Sequence record: NC_074653.1
Strand: one strand, 5' to 3'
DNA: 18,212 nt
The position numbers were made by a program, and so were the translations under genes. Positions 515 to 16,249 of the stretch are shown here, piece by piece (positions within the stretch are counted from its first letter, which is position 1; every line of letters starts with the position of its first letter). A model generated the notes under the pieces. The model worked only from the letters and a program-made list of their open reading frames with translations, was not told the DNA's origin and ran no database searches.

Positions 515-2092
515 ATGGGTTCTAAAAAAAGAAGAGAAGCGGCCGAAACCGAGGCCCTCACGGAGGCCACCCAACTCCCCGTAAATGACTCATTTCTCTC
601 TTCATTGCCAAGCTCAGTCTGGTTGTTAAAGAATTGCCGACTGGGATATAAAAGTATTGAGTGTCCATATGACATTAAGATCCATGTTAGGTGGTTTGAG
701 GACTACGTGGCTGTTAGCATAAACGGCGAAAAAGTCAAGCTGACTTATGAGGACTTCTATTCCATTGTCACGGGCGCTGAATATACAGTTAAACAACTCA
801 ATTGGGCCCACAAACTTGAGGTGGGAGATGAAGTGGTGACAGCCACCCCATGCTGGGATAGGAGTGGAAACCGCTTTTTTGTTATTAGGTATAACAATGA
901 CACTACAGACAGAAAGCCGATAATTACAAAGGGCGATACCATATTTATGCCAGGGTTCAACGCTAGCTTATGTCCACAGTATCGATATATCCGTGACGCC
1001 ACGGAGGAGGAGTTCAAAAAAGTCAACGCGGACCTCCTAAAGAATATGTCCCACCTCCCCAGCGATATCAGACACGCAATATACTATGCAATTATCTATG
1101 GTTTCGCGGTCCCACTGTCAGAACAAAGGCCCATTTTGGGATTATGGGGCCCTCCTGGAATAGGAAAGACCACGATACTGAAACTAGTGGCGGCTTTCCA
1201 TAACGCCTACATTGTTGAGGGGTACAGCCCAGCTAGCATAAGAAACCTACTGACATGGCAAAATGTTATTGCTGATGACGTATTAGAGTCCACTAGCGCT
1301 GAAAATATCCCTCAATTAACTGACTTGATACTGGCATATTTTAATAGACACGTGACCGCCAGAGTCTACACGACAAGTGCGTTTAGGAGGTTCTACACCC
1401 GCGGATCCCTATGGATGGCTGGGGCTAATCTCTTAGAAATTATCAACTATCGTGAGGGAATACCTAGGAGGTTACGGTTATATGGTTTGTTTAAGAAAGT
1501 CACTCCTGCAGACATTAACCATATATACAAAGATATAGAGTACTACATGGCGTTAAGCTACATAGTAGTGCCTAAGAAAATAATTGCTTTAGACGTGATA
1601 CTTGGGGACGTCTCAACGCCTACATCTCTATTGCTAGATACCGCTATGAGTATAGTGGGAATGTATGCCGATGCAGAACAGAAATTTGAGGAGACCTATG
1701 AGACGCCGCATGTGGAGTCCCATATTGTTTCGCTATTGCAGAGAACAATAAAGCAATTGAGAAAAGCGAAAGCCGCCCCAAAATACGCCAAGCCGCCCTA
1801 TCTCATAGTATTCTCTAAAGCCAGTAACATTCCCAAGCGCATTAGCACTAAGGCTATCATAAACGAGGACACTAAGGTGGTAGACGGTAAGCTAGTCAAT
1901 GTCCACAAGGTTTCTAGGGAGGCCCAAACATATACCACCGAAGAGCTTGTGAAGATATTCCGCTCTTTAGGTCTCCCGCTAGAAATCAAAGATAAGGCGG
2001 TTGTCGTGGAGGACACTAAGCTTGAGGAGGCTTTGCAGATAGCGTGTATGCGCTTACAAGACATGGGAGAGACGTCACCATATTGCCAATAG
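515..2092 (+). CDS. AAA+ ATPase, D5/P4-like superfamily 3 helicase (525 aa)
   Basis: Walker A GPPGIGKT (aa 212-219) preceded by SEQRPILGLW, Walker B VIADD, motif-C/sensor-1 SLWMAGAN, Arg finger GIPRRLRL. Confidence 0.85.
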   Translation: MGSKKRREAAETEALTEATQLPVNDSFLSSLPSSVWLLKNCRLGYKSIECPYDIKIHVRWFEDYVAVSINGEKVKLTYEDFYSIVTGAEYTVKQLNWAHKLEVGDEVVTATPCWDRSGNRFFVIRYNNDTTDRKPIITKGDTIFMPGFNASLCPQYRYIRDATEEEFKKVNADLLKNMSHLPSDIRHAIYYAIIYGFAVPLSEQRPILGLWGPPGIGKTTILKLVAAFHNAYIVEGYSPASIRNLLTWQNVIADDVLESTSAENIPQLTDLILAYFNRHVTARVYTTSAFRRFYTRGSLWMAGANLLEIINYREGIPRRLRLYGLFKKVTPADINHIYKDIEYYMALSYIVVPKKIIALDVILGDVSTPTSLLLDTAMSIVGMYADAEQKFEETYETPHVESHIVSLLQRTIKQLRKAKAAPKYAKPPYLIVFSKASNIPKRISTKAIINEDTKVVDGKLVNVHKVSREAQTYTTEELVKIFRSLGLPLEIKDKAVVVEDTKLEEALQIACMRLQDMGETSPYCQ

Positions 2093-2121
2093 TATTTTTT
2101 AACCCGCACCATTGTCTTTCT

Positions 2122-3045
2122 ATGTCTCAAAGACTCATCTTCTTTTTGAGCGCGTTTTCAATTGTCTATTTCACGCTCTTTAGCGGAAACCTATACCTTG
2201 ATTTAGTCATGTGGTTTATGGTTGTCATCTCCACCATATATGCGGCCGAAATATCCATGGCTTTATCTAATGCACGGCTGTGGTATAACGTCTTAGTCGT
2301 TTCTATGGCTATGTCATTGCCTCAGACCTTATTTGCCATAAAGCTAGCCAGCAGCGGGAAATATCTAGCTTCATGGATAGACACGCTGGGGTCCACGCTT
2401 GTTGACGCTATGCTAGTGACAGCTGTCCTTAGGAGGTACGTTATCGGCTCTCCCATGATATGGAATATGGTACCATTCTTGATAATGTGGTCCATGGCGG
2501 CTCTTTATGTCAACTATCACGCTTATGCTATCACCTACGGCCTTTTCAGACTCCCTGAGTGGGTGATAGTGGTAATTGGTATACTCCTCCCAATGGTCCT
2601 AGTGAGGCCCACGGGACTACCCCGTAAGAGCGAACTCATCATGTTGTTACTACACGCAGTTTCTACTGGGGTGTCCTCATACCAACTGTCCAATGTAATT
2701 GCGCAATTGCCTATCCATGAAATACAGCTAGGAATAGTGGCCACCATCCTTGCCACACTGCCAGACTTCTTAGTGGCCCTAATTATACGGAGTGCTGTGG
2801 CGAAAATCCTCAACGAGGTGGCCTCCGAGGAGGAGGCGTTAGCCACAATGCTAGCGTCCGCGGTTCACGACCAAATACTTATCCCAGCGCTAGTACTCAC
2901 ATTGTACCCGGAGGTGGCCGCTTACTATCCACACTATTTCAATGTCATAATTATCCTCCTCAAATTCACGCTGTTATTCCGCAATGTCTACTGGCTATTC
3001 GGCGTACCCTTCACCATCTTCTTGTTGTTAATGCCTCCCGTGTAG
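2122..3045 (+). CDS. CaCA-family (Na+/Ca2+ exchanger-like) membrane transporter (307 aa)
   Basis: Polytopic hydrophobic protein with two alpha-repeat-like motifs: SLPQ...LGSTLVD and TLPD...LASAVHD. Start moved from 2044 to ATG 2122, which avoids overlap and sits 25 nt after TTTTAA. Confidence 0.75.
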   Translation: MSQRLIFFLSAFSIVYFTLFSGNLYLDLVMWFMVVISTIYAAEISMALSNARLWYNVLVVSMAMSLPQTLFAIKLASSGKYLASWIDTLGSTLVDAMLVTAVLRRYVIGSPMIWNMVPFLIMWSMAALYVNYHAYAITYGLFRLPEWVIVVIGILLPMVLVRPTGLPRKSELIMLLLHAVSTGVSSYQLSNVIAQLPIHEIQLGIVATILATLPDFLVALIIRSAVAKILNEVASEEEALATMLASAVHDQILIPALVLTLYPEVAAYYPHYFNVIIILLKFTLLFRNVYWLFGVPFTIFLLLMPPV

Positions 3046-4754: not shown

Positions 4755-5486
4755 ATGGCTCGACTACAAGGAAACGCCAAAAGACCAACGTGGCTAGCTG
4801 CGGTTATTGTGGGCCTCATAATTCTGTTAGCCTTATGGGCCTACTTACTACCTAAGGGCGGTTCAGGTGGCGGTGGTGGCGGTGGTGGAGGTGGTACTAC
4901 TACTACAGCCCCAATGCCAGCGGTGTACCCCACGGGCGATATTTATAACGGATACAACTTAATCCTCTTAGAGGATTTTGTTAACCCTAACGACTATCAA
5001 ATTGTCGTGTCGGCTTTCGGTGAATATTCCAGTATACCCGTTTACGGAGGGTCTGGGGTACAGGGAAACATTACGCATGAACAAGCTTACCTAAAATACG
5101 GAGGCTTTAGTATCCCAATAATAGCAATTGCCTCCACTAATTCAACACTTAAACAAGACTTTCCTGGCATGCAAATACGCCTAGACACTAGCGGCGGCTA
5201 TATCCTCTACACGGCGCCTAATCTAGCTATCTACTACAGACACATGGCTTTCAACGTGAGTGGTACCACGGTCCACGTGTGGGCCCCAGCGTCACAACTA
5301 CCTCCACAATTATCGGGCGCCTCTCACCACGTGACGATAGACCCCGCTAACGGAGTGGCTTATGTTGACGGCATGCCTGTGAAGTTAAGTACAGGTGTTG
5401 CACAGCCTCAGAGGAAAGGAGTACTACGTGCGTGGCTTGTCATGACAAGCGTGCCAGGGACCTATACGTTAACCATTAATCCATAA
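4755..5486 (+). CDS. Membrane-anchored surface/virion glycoprotein with poly-Gly linker (243 aa)
   Basis: N-terminal TM helix, GGS-G10-T4 linker, beta-rich ectodomain, sequons NIT, NST and NVS. Confidence 0.8.
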   Translation: MARLQGNAKRPTWLAAVIVGLIILLALWAYLLPKGGSGGGGGGGGGGTTTTAPMPAVYPTGDIYNGYNLILLEDFVNPNDYQIVVSAFGEYSSIPVYGGSGVQGNITHEQAYLKYGGFSIPIIAIASTNSTLKQDFPGMQIRLDTSGGYILYTAPNLAIYYRHMAFNVSGTTVHVWAPASQLPPQLSGASHHVTIDPANGVAYVDGMPVKLSTGVAQPQRKGVLRAWLVMTSVPGTYTLTINP

Positions 5487-7132: not shown

Positions 7133-7849
7133 ATGCGTAAAATACCTATCCCGCTGTTAGTGGCCGCGCTAGTCGGTGTGACAGCTGTTGTTGTAACATT
7201 GCGGGTGACGGTGGTACCTATCCCCGTATATGCAGACCCTAACTTTACGGGACCAATACCTGCAAATATTGGTTCCGCATATTGGAAAGGCGGGTTCACT
7301 GAGGCCCAATTCTTTGCAAATACCACAGTGGATTACAGGTATTTCTATGGGGCCGCTATCGCGGTCTATGCGCCCAAAGGTATTCCTAACGCCACCATCG
7401 TTCGCAATTCTTACGTTAACAATTTAGGCGACTTTATTCAGTTCATTAACTTAACCTCAGGCGTCTACTTAGTCACCTACTATCCAGGTGGCTATTATAT
7501 TGTCGTGAAGTTAGTACCCACTGGGGTTAATGGTTTTTACATAGGACAAGCGCTCAACACTAATGAAATCCAAGTGGTAAATAAGATCAACACAAATGCA
7601 CATTATACGCTGACTGGGAGTGGCTATGACGCCACAAGTGGCAAATTCTTTGTTGCCTACCTAAGCGATACAGGCTCTTCGAATACAATTCTCATGCCTG
7701 CGGCGGGCCAAGGTACTAGCAATACCTTCACTATCAAAGGCTATGACGTATCTCTCAATGTCAACGGCGTCCCTATAGTGGTGAGATACGTCACGGGCGT
7801 GGCTATAATTCCCAGGTCTGACACTAAAGTCACAATTTACGTAAGGTAA
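7133..7849 (+). CDS. MRxIPIPL-family anchored surface protein, paralog 1 (238 aa)
   Basis: MRKIPIPLL plus a hydrophobic helix, beta-rich Y/T/N/G ectodomain, sequons NFT, NTT, NAT and NLT. Confidence 0.85.
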   Translation: MRKIPIPLLVAALVGVTAVVVTLRVTVVPIPVYADPNFTGPIPANIGSAYWKGGFTEAQFFANTTVDYRYFYGAAIAVYAPKGIPNATIVRNSYVNNLGDFIQFINLTSGVYLVTYYPGGYYIVVKLVPTGVNGFYIGQALNTNEIQVVNKINTNAHYTLTGSGYDATSGKFFVAYLSDTGSSNTILMPAAGQGTSNTFTIKGYDVSLNVNGVPIVVRYVTGVAIIPRSDTKVTIYVR

Positions 7850-7885
7850 ACCGTTAGACTTTTTTTATTCCATTTCTTAAACGGC

Positions 7886-8167
7886 GTGAAGTATTTGATA
7901 AGAGGCAAAGGATATGAGATGATTATAGAAAAGAACAGAAAGTATTTCGTGGCTAAGATGATTTGCGTCAAGGTGGCGCTTAACGTAATTGCCTGTTTAC
8001 AATATGACAAAGGGTGGAAACCGATACCCAGAAAAGTGTTTGAGGAGGTGAAAACTAGCGGTAAGGTAAAGGTGTTGGAAATGGCTAGCAATGTACCTAT
8101 ATGTCCCTTTTTACCATTTCTAGCTCTTTCGGCTAGCGAGGTAGTTGATAAGGTGAAAAACGCTTAA
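7886..8167 (+). CDS. Small basic hypothetical protein (93 aa)
   Basis: Non-overlapping ORF that fills the gap, Lys-rich. Confidence 0.7.
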   Translation: MKYLIRGKGYEMIIEKNRKYFVAKMICVKVALNVIACLQYDKGWKPIPRKVFEEVKTSGKVKVLEMASNVPICPFLPFLALSASEVVDKVKNA

Positions 8168-8191
8168 ATAATACTTAAGACAGCTTACTTA

Positions 8192-8917
8192 ATGATGCTA
8201 CCTCCAGGTACGGGACTTTTAGGCCTCATTGCTATTGGCATATTCAACAGGCGCGCTATTCCTATCGCTCTCATTACACTTTTTGTAAGCGGCGCTTTAG
8301 CGGCTAAGGCCCCACAATATTACGCCTACTTTACGCCGCTTATATATTCAGCCATTGCTCTTTACGCGCTAAGACAAGAGGAAAGGGTGATAGAAAGAGT
8401 AATAGGTCTATTGCTGGGGCTGTCCATAATTTGGGGCTCTGACAATGCGGCAATTGCTGACGCTCTTAGGAATATATCAATAACGCTTATCACTCCATTC
8501 TTTAAGGCTGTCTATGATGTCCTAGGCCTCTTAGGTTTCGGCGTGGCGCTTACTTCACTGTTAGCATGGTCTCTCTTGTCACCACGGCTAATGGCGTTGG
8601 AAGAGCCGCTATTGGCTATGGGTTATGTCGTGTTAGGGTTCACTCTATTGTCAGGCATAGTCAACGGTGTCCCAGACTACTTACGCTTAGCCTTAGCTAT
8701 TGCGTTATTGAACCAGTTTTCACGGGCCCTTAGAGGTAATCTGGAAGCCCTAGGAGAGGTGGCCCCAGTACTATTCCTCCTAGGTGAACTTATCCCAGCC
8801 ACCCAGTTGACAGCTTTAGGTGCTGTTGTGGCGATTATAGAATTAGCATTGGGGATACTAAACAGAAAGCACTTAGCGGGTTCAGCAATGTGGGCCACAG
8901 CAATAACATTAGTGTAA
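8192..8917 (+). CDS. Polytopic membrane protein (241 aa)
   Basis: Multiple TM segments. CTTAAATA lies at 8163-8170. Confidence 0.85.
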   Translation: MMLPPGTGLLGLIAIGIFNRRAIPIALITLFVSGALAAKAPQYYAYFTPLIYSAIALYALRQEERVIERVIGLLLGLSIIWGSDNAAIADALRNISITLITPFFKAVYDVLGLLGFGVALTSLLAWSLLSPRLMALEEPLLAMGYVVLGFTLLSGIVNGVPDYLRLALAIALLNQFSRALRGNLEALGEVAPVLFLLGELIPATQLTALGAVVAIIELALGILNRKHLAGSAMWATAITLV

Positions 8918-8918
8918 A

Positions 8919-9821
8919 ATGCTGACTAGACTATTCCTTTACACAACTCACGCGATAGCGCTAGTTTCAGCATTAATAGTATTGGCTATATTCGGTATCT
9001 CACTCTCCTCCCTCGTGGCGGCCGCGCTAGTATACGCATATGTCTATGGCTTGATACAATTTTGGACAAGGCATGAATTGCCGCCACCTCTTTTAGTGTT
9101 CTTATATATAATTGCATTTTTCGGCCTCATAGGGGAGACCCAGTTTATAGTGGCGGCCTCCGTAATAGTGGCGGCGTTTATGTTGAAAGAGCTGAAAATT
9201 GTAAAGGGTAATCCTCTTGACGCGGCAGTCAGTGGATTAAAGCTAGCTGTCTTAGGAGGCTTACTCCGCATAGGATTATTGACAGTAGCCCCTATTTATG
9301 AGGCCCTCAAGGTCCTAAGACGTTCTCCGATTTTAGCCATTACAATGCTGTTATCATTTCTACTCACGATATTTGCGCTTCTCTCCTCACTACTACATAT
9401 AGAGTATACAGTCCTCTCCACAGGACCGCTAAGCGGTGTATACGGTTTTCTGGACCCAGGTAATCCGTTTTTATGGGCTGGCGTAATTGCATATGAGGAG
9501 TTGATAGGTAGGCCTATTCCCATTGCCGACGCATTTTTCGTGCTATTGCACTATCCCTCTAGGGCCGTATACGCTTTTGATAAAATCACCAAAGACCCTC
9601 TATTGGCTACCGCTTTCGCCTTATTCGTGCTAACGGTAATACATATTGGGACAAGGTGGCTGTGGGACCTCTATAAGAAATACGGCTTTATAGGTTCACT
9701 GTCAGGCCACGCGGTCTACAATGCTGTACTATCGGCGAATTGGACGACTTTCTTATTACTATTTGTTCTTGGAATTGCGGCTTATATCTATGAGAAAACA
9801 TTAAAATCTGAGGCGATATGA
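8919..9821 (+). CDS. CPBP (Rce1/Abi, type II CAAX) family intramembrane protease (300 aa)
   Basis: EELIGR (E193,E194,R198) = EExxxR. FVLLH (F207-H211) = FxxxH. LYKKYG...HAVYN (H264-N268) = HxxxN. Polytopic. Confidence 0.75.
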   Translation: MLTRLFLYTTHAIALVSALIVLAIFGISLSSLVAAALVYAYVYGLIQFWTRHELPPPLLVFLYIIAFFGLIGETQFIVAASVIVAAFMLKELKIVKGNPLDAAVSGLKLAVLGGLLRIGLLTVAPIYEALKVLRRSPILAITMLLSFLLTIFALLSSLLHIEYTVLSTGPLSGVYGFLDPGNPFLWAGVIAYEELIGRPIPIADAFFVLLHYPSRAVYAFDKITKDPLLATAFALFVLTVIHIGTRWLWDLYKKYGFIGSLSGHAVYNAVLSANWTTFLLLFVLGIAAYIYEKTLKSEAI

Positions 9822-10213
9822 CAGCCATGTACAGATACCTAATACTCCTTCTAGCCACAGTGTTAGGCATAGGGACCGCCACGGTGATTACCTCATATAA
9901 TACGCTTGACGGCGTCTATAACGGGACAGTCCTTATCTACAATGGTACCTATTACCTCGTGCAGGGAAGAGAGTTAAACCTTAGTAATGTGGTGATAGCT
10001 AACGGTATAGTTGTTGTTAACGGAAACGGATACGCTATAGCCTCTAAGCTTAGCTGTGAAACTAAGAGTGGCATATTAAACGGCTTAATAGTCCTAAAAG
10101 GAGGTGGCTATGTGGTTTTAGGGGGACAAGAGATTAGGGTGGGTGACTACGTTGTCATTAATGGTACGGCGCTATTAATGAACGCGTGCGTGTATCATTC
10201 TTTAAAACGATAG
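9818..10213 (+). CDS. Membrane-anchored beta-hairpin-rich glycoprotein (131 aa)
   Basis: ATGA overlap with the protease gene, N-terminal TM, repeated NG turns, NGT x3 and NLS sequons. Confidence 0.8.
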   Translation: MTAMYRYLILLLATVLGIGTATVITSYNTLDGVYNGTVLIYNGTYYLVQGRELNLSNVVIANGIVVVNGNGYAIASKLSCETKSGILNGLIVLKGGGYVVLGGQEIRVGDYVVINGTALLMNACVYHSLKR

Positions 10214-10241
10214 GTTTTTTAACTAAACTATAATCCTTTTT

Positions 10242-10661
10242 GTGAGGCGCCTAATTGCTATCATATTGCTAGTAGTATTGCTGATATACTCCATATACAT
10301 GGCTTATTCCCAACCACGTTCTCCGAACGTTGTTATTGTGAGGCCTCAACAAGCACAGCCAGAAACCCAGACTGCCACTCCCCCTTCTGCACAGGTTCAG
10401 CCACTACCTCTCTTAGCCGTGTGTAATGCTATATATCTAAAGATAGGTAATACACAACTGTGCGGGACCATAACAAGCTTATTTTATACTACTACAGGCT
10501 ATCAAATTGCCATGAAAAGCGGGTGGATTAGTGGACAATTCATTATAGTGAGGCCTCCTATTTGTTCAGTCAACACTACAGGGAATGTAGTCAATATCCC
10601 ATGTGACGTGGAGGTCCTAATCCCTACGCGGCCTATAGAACCCTCCACTACCGTGTCATGA
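10242..10661 (+). CDS. Membrane-anchored protein with Q/P/T linker (139 aa)
   Basis: MRR plus TM helix, PQQAQPETQTATPP linker, 4-Cys beta domain. Confidence 0.8.
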   Translation: MRRLIAIILLVVLLIYSIYMAYSQPRSPNVVIVRPQQAQPETQTATPPSAQVQPLPLLAVCNAIYLKIGNTQLCGTITSLFYTTTGYQIAMKSGWISGQFIIVRPPICSVNTTGNVVNIPCDVEVLIPTRPIEPSTTVS

Positions 10662-10663
10662 TT

Positions 10664-10717
10664 TTTTACTGCTCGAGGTAAATTATTTCGGCGCATTTTT
10701 TACCTCGGAGAGTAAAA
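10664..10717. other. Long intergenic stem-loop/inverted repeat
   Basis: TTTTACT (10664-70) pairs with AGTAAAA (10711-17). GAGGTAAA (10675-82) pairs with TTTACCTC (10699-706). CTC/GAG pairs between them with bulges. Confidence 0.6.
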
Positions 10718-10820: not shown

Positions 10821-11042
10821 ATGGTATTAGAATTGTTTAAGGCTAAGGAGAGGCCTCCCATATGCATAGTTGAACCAATGCCTAATGGGGACTTTACGCT
10901 ACAATGTGACGTCACTAAAGAGACCGCTAGACGGTTAATTGATAAGGAGAAGGTCTGTGTCATTGAGTTTGACGTGAAGAGCGGTAAGCCGATATCCTAT
11001 TGTGGTCCAGGTAAAGACGTGGTTACTAGGATATTCCTGTAA
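10821..11042 (+). CDS. Small 4-Cys hypothetical protein (73 aa)
   Basis: TTTTTATA about 27 nt upstream. TAATG overlap with the next gene. Confidence 0.75.
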   Translation: MVLELFKAKERPPICIVEPMPNGDFTLQCDVTKETARRLIDKEKVCVIEFDVKSGKPISYCGPGKDVVTRIFL

Positions 11043-11509
11043 TGTGGCGCAAACTAACGGTTTTTGTCTACCTCATTTTTTTGGGAATTTCATGGCTACA
11101 ATTGACGTGGTTTTTCGGATATCCTAGCGTGGGCGGTTTCGTGTTGACGCCTAGCGCGCACCCCTATATCCCTCCACTAAGCCTTGTTATCACAGTCCCC
11201 TCAAACATGTGTGAAGGGTGGGCGGTGAAGCTAGTAAAGGCGAATTTTTACGGCGTTGGTATATACCTCCCTGTGGTCCACTATTTCGCAAAGGCTGGCT
11301 CTATAACCTATGAGGTTTTCAATTATTACCAATTCGGTGACGTGGTGGGCTATTTTAGGGCCCTCCTATTCCCTCAATGGACCGCGATACCTTATAATGG
11401 GACATGCGTGGCTAAGGTGGTGTTTATAATTCCTGCACCTGTCGTGATTCTAATTAGTATAATAGCGCTAACAACGCGGTTTTACCTAGGCCTAAAGCGA
11501 ATTTGGTGA
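11042..11509 (+). CDS. Membrane protein with N- and C-terminal TM helices (155 aa)
   Basis: Hydrophobic termini, beta-rich middle with 2 Cys and an NGT sequon. Confidence 0.8.
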   Translation: MWRKLTVFVYLIFLGISWLQLTWFFGYPSVGGFVLTPSAHPYIPPLSLVITVPSNMCEGWAVKLVKANFYGVGIYLPVVHYFAKAGSITYEVFNYYQFGDVVGYFRALLFPQWTAIPYNGTCVAKVVFIIPAPVVILISIIALTTRFYLGLKRIW

Positions 11510-11561: not shown

Positions 11562-11819
11562 ATGTCAACTAACTTAGGCGAATACCCCGACAGGATTCAG
11601 GGTACACCATACGTTGAACAGGTGGAGGAGAAGTATAAGCTGAAAGTGGCTATCGGAATTTGCAATGCTCTCCGTGAGGCCGACCCCGAGAGCTTTCGTG
11701 CGCTAGGCGGTTTTGAGGAGTGTGTTAGGGCCGCGTCAAGATGGGCTGACTACAATTTTGACATGTGGAAAGTCAATTGGCCTAAGAGTGTGAGCGCCGC
11801 TATTACCGCGTTCAAATAA
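11562..11819 (+). CDS. Small alpha-helical protein (85 aa), candidate major nucleocapsid protein
   Basis: Monocistronic unit with consensus promoter and T-tract terminator. ATG 11562 fits leaderless spacing better than 11550. The structural role is inferred. Confidence 0.7.
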   Translation: MSTNLGEYPDRIQGTPYVEQVEEKYKLKVAIGICNALREADPESFRALGGFEECVRAASRWADYNFDMWKVNWPKSVSAAITAFK

Positions 11820-12755: not shown

Positions 12756-13559
12756 ATGAGAATACCTATACCGCTAATATTCGCGGCCGTTATAACGCTT
12801 ACCTCAGTCACGTTAGTATTTAAGGTGGCGGTGACGGTTTTAGGAAGTTATGACCCCTCCTATGCGGCCTTTAACGGTACTCACGTTGTTTCTCTGGCTT
12901 TACCCTCCACGACTTACGTATACGTCTACGGTGGAGGAGGTGGGACAGCCACTTATGCAGGCGCTACCACAACCTACCAATATCAGTGTTTCGGTTCAGC
13001 ATGCACCACAGGGAGTGATTTCGGCGCTTATTTCCCTGTATTGATTACTGTCAATAGCGGAAGCTATCCCTTTGATACCACCATAGAGGTTTCTCAGCCT
13101 TATGGGCGCACTACCTATAAGGTAAGGGTAGTGCTATACAGTGACGGAAATGGGTGGGTGGCAGGACAGTCTGCCACGAGTCTGGGTGCGGGACAAATAG
13201 GGTATAGTATACCTGTGAAATGGTATCAGTCCTCTGGTGGACGAATATGGATATATCCGATAGACCGTGGCCGTATAAGTAGGAGTCTATCAGAGGGGTG
13301 TAGTGTGGCGGGACTGGGAGGCGCCTTATATAAATACGTGGTGTCAATTCAGACAGGTCAGATGTATGACTGCTCAAGCGCTTCATGGGGGAGTGGTACT
13401 TTCAAATTCTCCACGATAGCCTCCTCCACTACCACAGCCACGTGGTCCATAGGGTGGATTACACAGCGTGTTAGCGGTTCTAGCTATGACATTACTATTC
13501 ACTACGCGCCCCTTATTTTCATTTCTCCCGCTACTCACTTCACCGTAAAGCCGCAATGA
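12756..13559 (+). CDS. MRxIPIPL-family anchored surface protein, paralog 2 (267 aa)
   Basis: MRIPIPLIF plus a hydrophobic helix, G/S/T/Y-rich ectodomain, G5 run, 4 Cys. Confidence 0.85.
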   Translation: MRIPIPLIFAAVITLTSVTLVFKVAVTVLGSYDPSYAAFNGTHVVSLALPSTTYVYVYGGGGGTATYAGATTTYQYQCFGSACTTGSDFGAYFPVLITVNSGSYPFDTTIEVSQPYGRTTYKVRVVLYSDGNGWVAGQSATSLGAGQIGYSIPVKWYQSSGGRIWIYPIDRGRISRSLSEGCSVAGLGGALYKYVVSIQTGQMYDCSSASWGSGTFKFSTIASSTTTATWSIGWITQRVSGSSYDITIHYAPLIFISPATHFTVKPQ

Positions 13560-15478: not shown

Positions 15479-16249
15479 ATGAGGCGTATTCCAATTCCAC
15501 TAATATTGGCGGCGGTAATTGCTGTGGGCGTGACAGTCACTATTATATTCCAGATAACAGTACTGACTCCTCCCAGCGCGGTGGTAGTGCTAGTACCACA
15601 AGGCTCTTCAACTGTCACTTATCAATTTGTGGCCATAGACGTGAAACACGCGGCATTTCCAATAGGAATGGGCTTAATGCAAATTACTTACAATACCACC
15701 AATTTCTACTACTACAATGTTACTGAGTTGTGGTCCCTAGCGGTTCCCGCCTCTAGATACATTAATATGACTGGTACCTATTCGGTAAATACTGGGACTA
15801 GAACTTACTCTTTTAACGTATTTGACTGTGGTAATGTCGTGGTTGTGGGCTATTTAACCACAGTTTACATAGGACAATGGGTAGATTTCGGAGGCTTTAA
15901 AGTGGCGGTACCTGTCAACTTCACAGCCTCTCAAGACCAGTTGACGTGTGCTAGGAAATACATGGGTTATTACAATTTAGCTGGCGTTAATATCTTTAGC
16001 CCCAGAATTGACTACTATGCTTTCGACGGTACCTACATCTACGTCTATTATGACCGTGTGGATACCTCTACCTATTACTTCAGATATGACAGACTTTCAT
16101 ATAAGCCTACCACGCTAAGCAATAATGCGGTGATAGGATACAAAGTCACGGACCCCGGAACTGGGGTAGTCTACTTAGGAGGATTTTACGTGGGCGCATT
16201 TAGCGCCACCTCAAGCGGAACCTACGTGGTAGGCGTCAAGGGACAGTAA
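15479..16249 (+). CDS. MRxIPIPL-family anchored surface protein, paralog 3 (256 aa)
   Basis: MRRIPIPLIL plus a hydrophobic helix, Y/T/V-rich ectodomain, sequons NTT, NVT, NMT and NFT. Confidence 0.85.
   Translation: MRRIPIPLILAAVIAVGVTVTIIFQITVLTPPSAVVVLVPQGSSTVTYQFVAIDVKHAAFPIGMGLMQITYNTTNFYYYNVTELWSLAVPASRYINMTGTYSVNTGTRTYSFNVFDCGNVVVVGYLTTVYIGQWVDFGGFKVAVPVNFTASQDQLTCARKYMGYYNLAGVNIFSPRIDYYAFDGTYIYVYYDRVDTSTYYFRYDRLSYKPTTLSNNAVIGYKVTDPGTGVVYLGGFYVGAFSATSSGTYVVGVKGQ

Follow-up and report, generated by a model that had tools for sequence, protein, structure and literature searches.

The 300-residue product of gene 15 (gp15, ORF15-300; 8919..9821) of Pyrobaculum spherical virus 2 (PSV2; Globuloviridae), annotated as a 'hypothetical protein', carries all three sequence motifs of the CPBP superfamily and, judging from its sequence, is a putative CPBP-superfamily intramembrane glutamic endopeptidase. 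It is quite probable that gp15 is a very distant CPBP/Rce1 homologue at the superfamily level, and we give a rough probability of 0.55 to the fuller proposal that it is catalytically active as a CPBP-type protease and has viral membrane proteins as its substrates. The window analyzed here is the complete linear genome of PSV2 (NC_074653.1; 18,212 bp), a virus of Pyrobaculum arsenaticum with 32 annotated genes; all of these, and the motifs and the promoter- and terminator-like elements of the gp14-gp16 region described below, are on the + strand. The 2,470-bp region from 8192 to 10661, which includes gp15, was 100% identical to MN876845.1.

Motif 1, E193-E194-L-I-G-R198 (9495..9512), is an EExxxR sequence within a membrane helix and aligned with EELFFR of bacterial CPBP proteins, which in turn aligned with EELGWR of the prenyl endopeptidase MmRce1. 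Motif 2, F207-V-L-L-H211 (aromatic-x3-His; 9537..9551), and motif 3, H264-A-V-Y-N268 (9708..9722), aligned with the CPBP motifs FxxxH and HxxxN, respectively, in profile-profile comparisons with hhalign. The coordinates and length of the gene and the three signatures (EELIGR 193-198, FVLLH 207-211, HAVYN 264-268) agreed with an earlier sequence-only reading of the window. In shuffled versions of gp15, the three motifs occurred in order just 5 times in 200,000.

Homologues of gp15 were found in 4/4 cultured globuloviruses, the other three being ORF317 of PSV, ORF11 of TTSV1 and GP7 of TSPV1; their tblastn matches were 34-41% identical. Among 1.84 billion representative proteins, only 19 sequences reached E ≤ 0.001 in a profile search. 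The contigs inspected for the distant members look viral, since they carry small genes with no Pfam match except a single DUF5658 and also encode homologues of PSV2 gp03, gp17 or the virion protein VP1. gp15 is a gene carried by every known spherical virus of Pyrobaculum and Thermoproteus archaea and a core globulovirus gene. In the deposited PSV record an ambiguous base leaves an X in the translation of ORF317 (L002:6579-7526), in the loop before the catalytic core; the translation of ORF163, the PSV homologue of gp19, also has an X.

In an alignment of 27 homologues, the most distant at 24% identity, no columns were invariant except E193, E194, R198, H211, H264, Y267 and N268, and six of these seven are defining residues of the three CPBP motifs. 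The position four residues before the motif 2 histidine was F or W in the alignment rows inspected. Because invariance is nearly confined to motif residues, the motifs probably form a working site, and this is the strongest single argument for such a site. The same observation bears on the alternative that gp15 descends from a CPBP protein and is no protease, serving instead as a structural or scaffolding protein of the envelope or as a regulator that binds partners such as the virion protein VP2. Noncatalytic CPBP proteins are documented, namely Abx1 (PMC3578759) and CflP (PMC13692083), and they weigh against reading catalysis from the motifs; in PSV and PSV2, moreover, gp15 appears to be translationally coupled to VP2, and both the truncation between motifs 1 and 2 and the predicted fold, which is unlike that of Rce1 (see below), fit a protein of this kind. 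Catalytic residues that are essentially the sole unchanging positions in 27 sequences are, however, the pattern expected of an active site and not of a scaffold, and we consider a role without proteolysis quite unlikely.

The relationship to cellular enzymes was assessed with a CPBP reference consisting of P0036 and 76 bacterial loci, drawn from 80 genome loci in which the best ORF (open reading frame) matched P0036 in 78 cases. P0036 is a genuine PF02517 protein (62 bits against Pfam) and was, at E = 3, the first cellular protein to appear below the gp15 family when 5.8 billion proteins were searched with a profile. A 24-sequence version of the reference matched the MmRce1 structure 4CAD at E 3e-11. 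For the 27-sequence family alignment, hhalign gave probabilities of 89% against P0036 alone, 92.6% (P 4.6e-7) against 77 CPBP domains, and 92.2% (P 5.9e-7) against the 24-sequence version that matches 4CAD. EELIxR, FVLLH and HAVYN all fell on the corresponding CPBP motifs in the ~92% alignments, with a 15-residue gap between motifs 1 and 2, and the similarity spanned 64-68 columns, extending beyond the motif residues alone. Controls in which query or template was reversed or column-shuffled reached at most 0.3%, with scores of at most 14.6 compared with 54.1. When close relatives of P0036 were left out of the template the value was 84.8%; against this template it dropped to 77.7% once the three members most like CPBPs were taken out of the family, and to 58% when the query was a 10-sequence alignment only. 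Hence, the profile-profile signal that links the gp15 family to CPBP proteins is real but moderate. That the signal weakens with shallower alignments is the probable reason why it was missed in earlier HHpred runs, for which only three genomes were available. The published description of PSV2 limits its HHpred annotations to ORF2, 3, 4 and 32, plus ORF11 as DUF1286, and does not mention ORF15 (bioRxiv 10.1101/2020.01.16.907410).

Beside the two drops just given, the outcome of the direct searches counts against the CPBP assignment. gp15 itself had no Pfam or NCBIfam match even at E ≤ 10, its sole match in PADLOC was a weak and evidently chance one to Cas8a (E 0.022), and two family profiles compared with PDB sequences by hmmsearch found nothing at E ≤ 10. 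Among the family members, PF02517 was the commonest and best sub-threshold Pfam family (3/27, best E 0.011), with the best member at 16.4 bits, which is below the gathering threshold of 22.4 bits. A single member (1/27) showed a weak match to the PrsW family (PF13367) over the third-motif region (E 0.033), well below threshold, and the other 26 showed none. PrsW is the site-1 protease of the anti-sigma factor RsiW and belongs to the same superfamily as CPBP proteins, where Pei et al. are said to have placed it in 2011. Searches of PHROGs with the gp15 family gave noise or a function-unknown PHROG, and a CPBP consensus typed by hand had no match among phages in tblastn. In the literature searched, no paper connected Globuloviridae with CAAX or CPBP proteins.

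Structure prediction pointed in the same unfavorable direction. AlphaFold2 models were obtained for full-length gp15 (pLDDT 76, pTM 0.81) and for residues 170-300 (pLDDT 82, pTM 0.66), based on shallow alignments of 11 and 27 sequences. With Foldseek against the PDB, the full-length model had no match at E < 0.1 and the C-terminal domain model none at E < 1, and in neither case was Rce1 among the matches listed. The full-length model retrieved transporters with TM-scores of 0.1-0.2, which is noise, and the domain model retrieved channel noise; against BFVD, the full-length model matched the TTSV1 homologue only (TM-score 0.67-0.70). In both models residues 227-272 formed a single unbroken helix, as opposed to the hairpin of transmembrane (TM) helix 6, turn and TM7 of CPBP proteins; the turn expected in those proteins would fall at KKYG 253-256 in gp15. 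As modelled, this unbroken helix does not favor convergence of the catalytic residues. The structural evidence against a canonical fold is nonetheless weak, because the alignments were shallow, Foldseek has low power on all-helical membrane proteins, and no positive control or coordinate measurement was included.

Spacing between the motifs also departs from that of known CPBP proteins. From the glutamate of motif 1 to the histidine of motif 2, the distance in gp15 was 18 residues, and all 27 members had 18-24, compared with 33-34 in the 76 bacterial CPBPs, and the unusually short spacing already remarked on from the sequence was therefore real. By branch, the distance was 18-19 in PSV/PSV2-like and TTSV1/TSPV1-like sequences and 23-24 in the distant lineages. 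The catalytic numbering of MmRce1, which we take to be E140 and H173, corresponds to 33 residues. The hairpin bearing motifs 1 and 2 is thus 9-15 residues shorter than in bacterial CPBPs. A Glu-to-His distance of 18-24 residues is too short for the two motifs to sit on two consecutive full TM helices (~33 residues), and this too stands against the assignment. Motifs 2 and 3 were separated by 42-57 residues, mostly overlapping the 30-48 residues of bacterial CPBPs. Because both ends of the hairpin are on one side of the membrane, its shortening would leave the topology unchanged, and we infer that the tip of the TM4-TM5 hairpin was trimmed and its active-site part kept. Of the CPBP/Rce1-type assignment put forward in the sequence-only reading, what holds is the motif-confined invariance and the ~92% hhalign result; what tempers it is that no curated threshold was reached, that the hairpin spacing is noncanonical and that Rce1 was not among the Foldseek matches listed.

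These results also bear on the possibility that gp15 is unrelated to CPBP proteins, with EE/R, H and H/N forming some other intramembrane polar site, for instance the metal or ion site of a transporter or channel, and with the likeness of the motifs being convergent. Such an origin would account for the lack of any sequence-profile match above a curated threshold, for the lack of a protease fold in the Foldseek results and for a hairpin spacing unlike that of CPBPs, and the virus has other transporter-like proteins, gp03 being cation-exchanger-like (bioRxiv 10.1101/2020.01.16.907410). It would not readily account for the hhalign alignments, which put the three motifs in register at a P of about 5e-7 with clean controls and cover far more columns than the motifs occupy, and the transporter matches from Foldseek that might have spoken for it are at noise level. 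We consider convergence rather unlikely.

If gp15 is a CPBP-type protease, E193 and H211 would, by analogy with MmRce1, activate a water molecule, the oxyanion hole would consist of H264 and N268, and E194 and R198 would support the catalytic residues. Like type II CAAX prenyl endopeptidases (Rce1; MmRce1, 4CAD; PF02517), gp15 has EExxxR, aromatic-x3-H and HxxxN, in the same order and in register through the CPBP reference profile, and it is a polytopic helical protein with several TM segments before the motif-bearing core. The suggestion that gp15 has about 130 residues of extra N-terminal TM sequence was overstated: 192 residues precede motif 1, compared with 242 in the genuine CPBP protein P0036, and the N-terminal TM regions of CPBP proteins are variable. 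It differs from Rce1 in having no Pfam or PDB sequence match and no Foldseek match, and in the distance from Glu to His, 18 residues as opposed to 33 in the cellular enzymes. A further difference is that no prenylated CAAX substrate was evident in the PSV2 genome. gp25, which has the sole CxxX end in the genome (CSPQ), was considered as a CAAX substrate and dropped, as it is specific to PSV2 and has no homologue in other globuloviruses.

The genomic context of gp15 was compared across 27 hot-spring metagenome loci and 4 distant loci, of which 21 had enough downstream sequence. The order gp15-(gp16)-gp17-gp18 was present in all informative metagenomic loci (21/21), and those long enough all continued through gp19 and VP1. 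Among the cultured viruses, the counterparts of PSV2 gp15-gp16-gp17-gp18-gp19 were ORF317-134-138-76a-163 in PSV and ORF11-15 in TTSV1, and GP7-GP10 of TSPV1 correspond to the block without gp16. Homologues of gp16 were found in PSV (ORF134) and TTSV1 (ORF12); TSPV1 lacks a counterpart of gp16, and none was detected in TTSV1/TSPV1-like metagenomic loci. PSV and PSV2 both have the VP2 gene directly 5' of gp15, and in PSV there are 4-nt overlaps. As a general conserved partner of gp15, VP2 was rejected, since the adjacency is confined to the PSV-like lineage and VP2 is located elsewhere in TTSV1 and TSPV1. A gp17-family gene was detected in two of the distant loci (L086 and L089). In three of the four distant loci (L086, L087 and L089) the gp15 homologue was located directly 3' of a homologue of gp03, a 9-TM cation-exchanger-like protein, in a neighborhood unlike that of the cultured viruses. 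The start of gp03 in PSV2 is itself uncertain, with a mechanically called ORF beginning at a GTG at 2044 (2044-3045, overlapping the end of gp02) and the GenBank gene at 2122-3045.

This distribution was weighed against the suggestion that gp15 is a CPBP-type protease or immunity protein aimed outward, cleaving or masking a host surface protein such as a receptor to prevent superinfection, or conferring Abi-like bacteriocin immunity. The homology evidence is the same as for a protease acting on viral proteins, and bacterial CPBP/Abi proteins do act in bacteriocin immunity and processing, SilX being an example (PMC9298176). SilX and MroQ share with gp15 the motif set, the small polytopic architecture and a position beside functional partners; they are, however, accessory genes of bacteriocin or quorum-sensing loci, whereas gp15 belongs to the core of a structural module in a virus. 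Genes for exclusion or immunity tend to be variable and accessory. gp15, in contrast, occurred in each globulovirus and relative recovered, some with as little as 24% identity, and always inside the block of structural and membrane protein genes that includes VP1. Its universal presence in the relatives examined would fit morphogenesis better than an accessory exclusion factor, and an outward-directed role appears distinctly improbable.

As an active protease of viral proteins, gp15 would most likely cleave at least one virus-encoded membrane-anchored protein in the host membrane during envelope assembly. It appears to head a conserved block of genes for membrane and virion proteins that runs from gp15 to gp20, and the cleavage could remove or trim a membrane anchor, either the C-terminal one of gp19 or the N-terminal one of gp17 or gp16. 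gp19 (11042..11509), a candidate substrate of 155 residues with an N-terminal signal or TM segment, is among the most conserved proteins compared (37-64% identity to homologues). It co-occurred with gp15 in 19/19 loci that reached far enough downstream. Its C-terminus consists of an invariant Cys, VVxx[IV]P, a TM helix of about 20 residues and, without exception, a terminal [KR]R[VI]W; this element was kept in 4 isolates and 19 distinct metagenomic homologues (homologues at L002:8787-9272, L003:5814-6293 and L004:5083-5565, and in metagenomic loci L093-L116). In its layout the C-terminus of gp19 resembles a tripartite C-terminal sorting signal, apparently of a hitherto undescribed type.

gp17 (10242..10661; 139 residues, N-terminal TM anchor, one sequon) is a candidate substrate or partner. 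Its family has a conserved juxtamembrane sequence, PxxPxVVVV[GKR]P, directly past the N-terminal anchor, then a low-complexity linker rich in Q, T and P and a domain in which cysteines are conserved; homologues were found in loci L086 and L093-L116, and gp17 lies 3' of gp15 in all globulovirus lineages. Between gp17 and gp19, in all four globuloviruses, is the gene for gp18 (10821..11042), a small soluble protein of 73 residues in which the cysteines C15, C29, C46 and C61 are invariant. The block ends at its 3' side with gp20, which is VP1 (11562..11819). The sequence-only reading had favored as substrates the proteins with the N-terminus MR(K/R)IPIPL followed by a TM helix, which are gp12/VP3 (7133-7849), gp23 (12756-13559) and gp28 (15479-16249); the same N-terminus was found in PSV ORF270, PSV ORF282 and TSPV1 GP13. 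These IPIPL genes are not linked to gp15 across lineages: gp12 is 5' of gp15 in PSV-like genomes only, and gp23 and gp28, where found, lie past VP1 in PSV-like loci. Because gp17, gp18 and gp19 follow gp15 in every informative locus, they and not the IPIPL family are indicated, and gp19 and gp17 would be the better candidate substrates.

A precedent for this arrangement exists in bacteria, where CPBP enzymes adjoin their membrane-anchored substrates and cut C-terminal sorting signals (PMC11980579). The genes for the myxosortases MrtX and MrtJ, bacterial CPBP enzymes of this kind, adjoin genes for membrane-anchored surface proteins, as gp15 does, and the layout of gp19 (invariant Cys, short motif, TM helix, basic tail) is similar to those of MYXO-CTERM and JDVT-CTERM. 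The gp19 motif itself, C-x3-VV-x2-IP ... [KR]R[VI]W, differs and matched no described CTERM family or sorting signal, and no lipidation enzyme was evident. The link between gp15 and gp19 is one of gene order, and MrtX passes family thresholds whereas gp15 does not. We put forward only tentatively the specific proposal that gp15 is a sortase-like minimal CPBP with a truncated TM4-TM5 hairpin that cuts gp19 at its C-terminal anchor, or gp17 or gp16 at their N-terminal anchors, as an obligatory step in envelope formation. If this were true, gp15 would be without a described precedent as an intramembrane maturation protease encoded by an archaeal virus.

Few virus families are as poorly annotated as the globuloviruses, and with gp15 an unannotated core gene gains a testable function as the first enzyme candidate in the globulovirus block of envelope-protein genes. 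Together, a catalytic candidate and candidate substrates offer a handle on envelope assembly and maturation in an enveloped hyperthermophilic archaeal virus. Should the CPBP assignment hold, gp15 would be a known kind of enzyme in a new, truncated viral form and an entry point into globulovirus envelope biogenesis; curated family models would then miss a whole viral branch of the CPBP superfamily, and a CPBP with a hairpin shortened by 9-15 residues would be a test of what length of the TM4-TM5 hairpin is required by the catalytic core.

In PSV2, the gene immediately upstream of gp15 is gp14 (8192..8917), which encodes a polytopic membrane protein of 241 residues. The polytopic neighbor noted earlier from the sequence is thus present and adjoining, with the correction that it is the annotated virion protein VP2 (MN876845.1); it matched PHROG 35471, 'virion structural protein', at E 4e-96. 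The TAA stop of gp14 (8915-8917) is followed by one base and then by the gp15 ATG at 8919, and the stop of gp15 and the start of gp16 share ATGA at 9818-9821, so that the junction sequences confirmed the proposed tight coupling, a 1-nt gap on the 5' side and an ATGA overlap on the 3' side. gp16 (9818..10213) is an N-terminally anchored protein of 131 residues with four N-x-S/T sequons. The description of the downstream proteins as anchored glycoproteins was accurate as to the anchors, and glycosylation is suggested by the sequons alone (four in gp16, one in gp17).

A TATA-box-like element, TTAAATAATA (8164..8173), read from the sequence, is located about 20-28 nt 5' of the gp14 ATG, and a T6 run directly 3' of the gp16 stop (10215..10220) resembles an archaeal terminator. 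General features of archaeal promoters and terminators suggest that gp14, gp15 and gp16 form one transcription unit, and from what is generally known of crenarchaeal promoters TTAAATAATA is a possible start of it. T6-T7 runs were found at ~7861-7867, 10215-10220, 10662-10667 and 10696-10701, just past the stops of gp12, gp16 and gp17, the position expected of archaeal terminators. Elsewhere in the window, gp08 (4755-5486), an anchored protein with three sequons, has an unusual homopolymeric linker of 12 glycines followed by four threonines after its N-terminal anchor.

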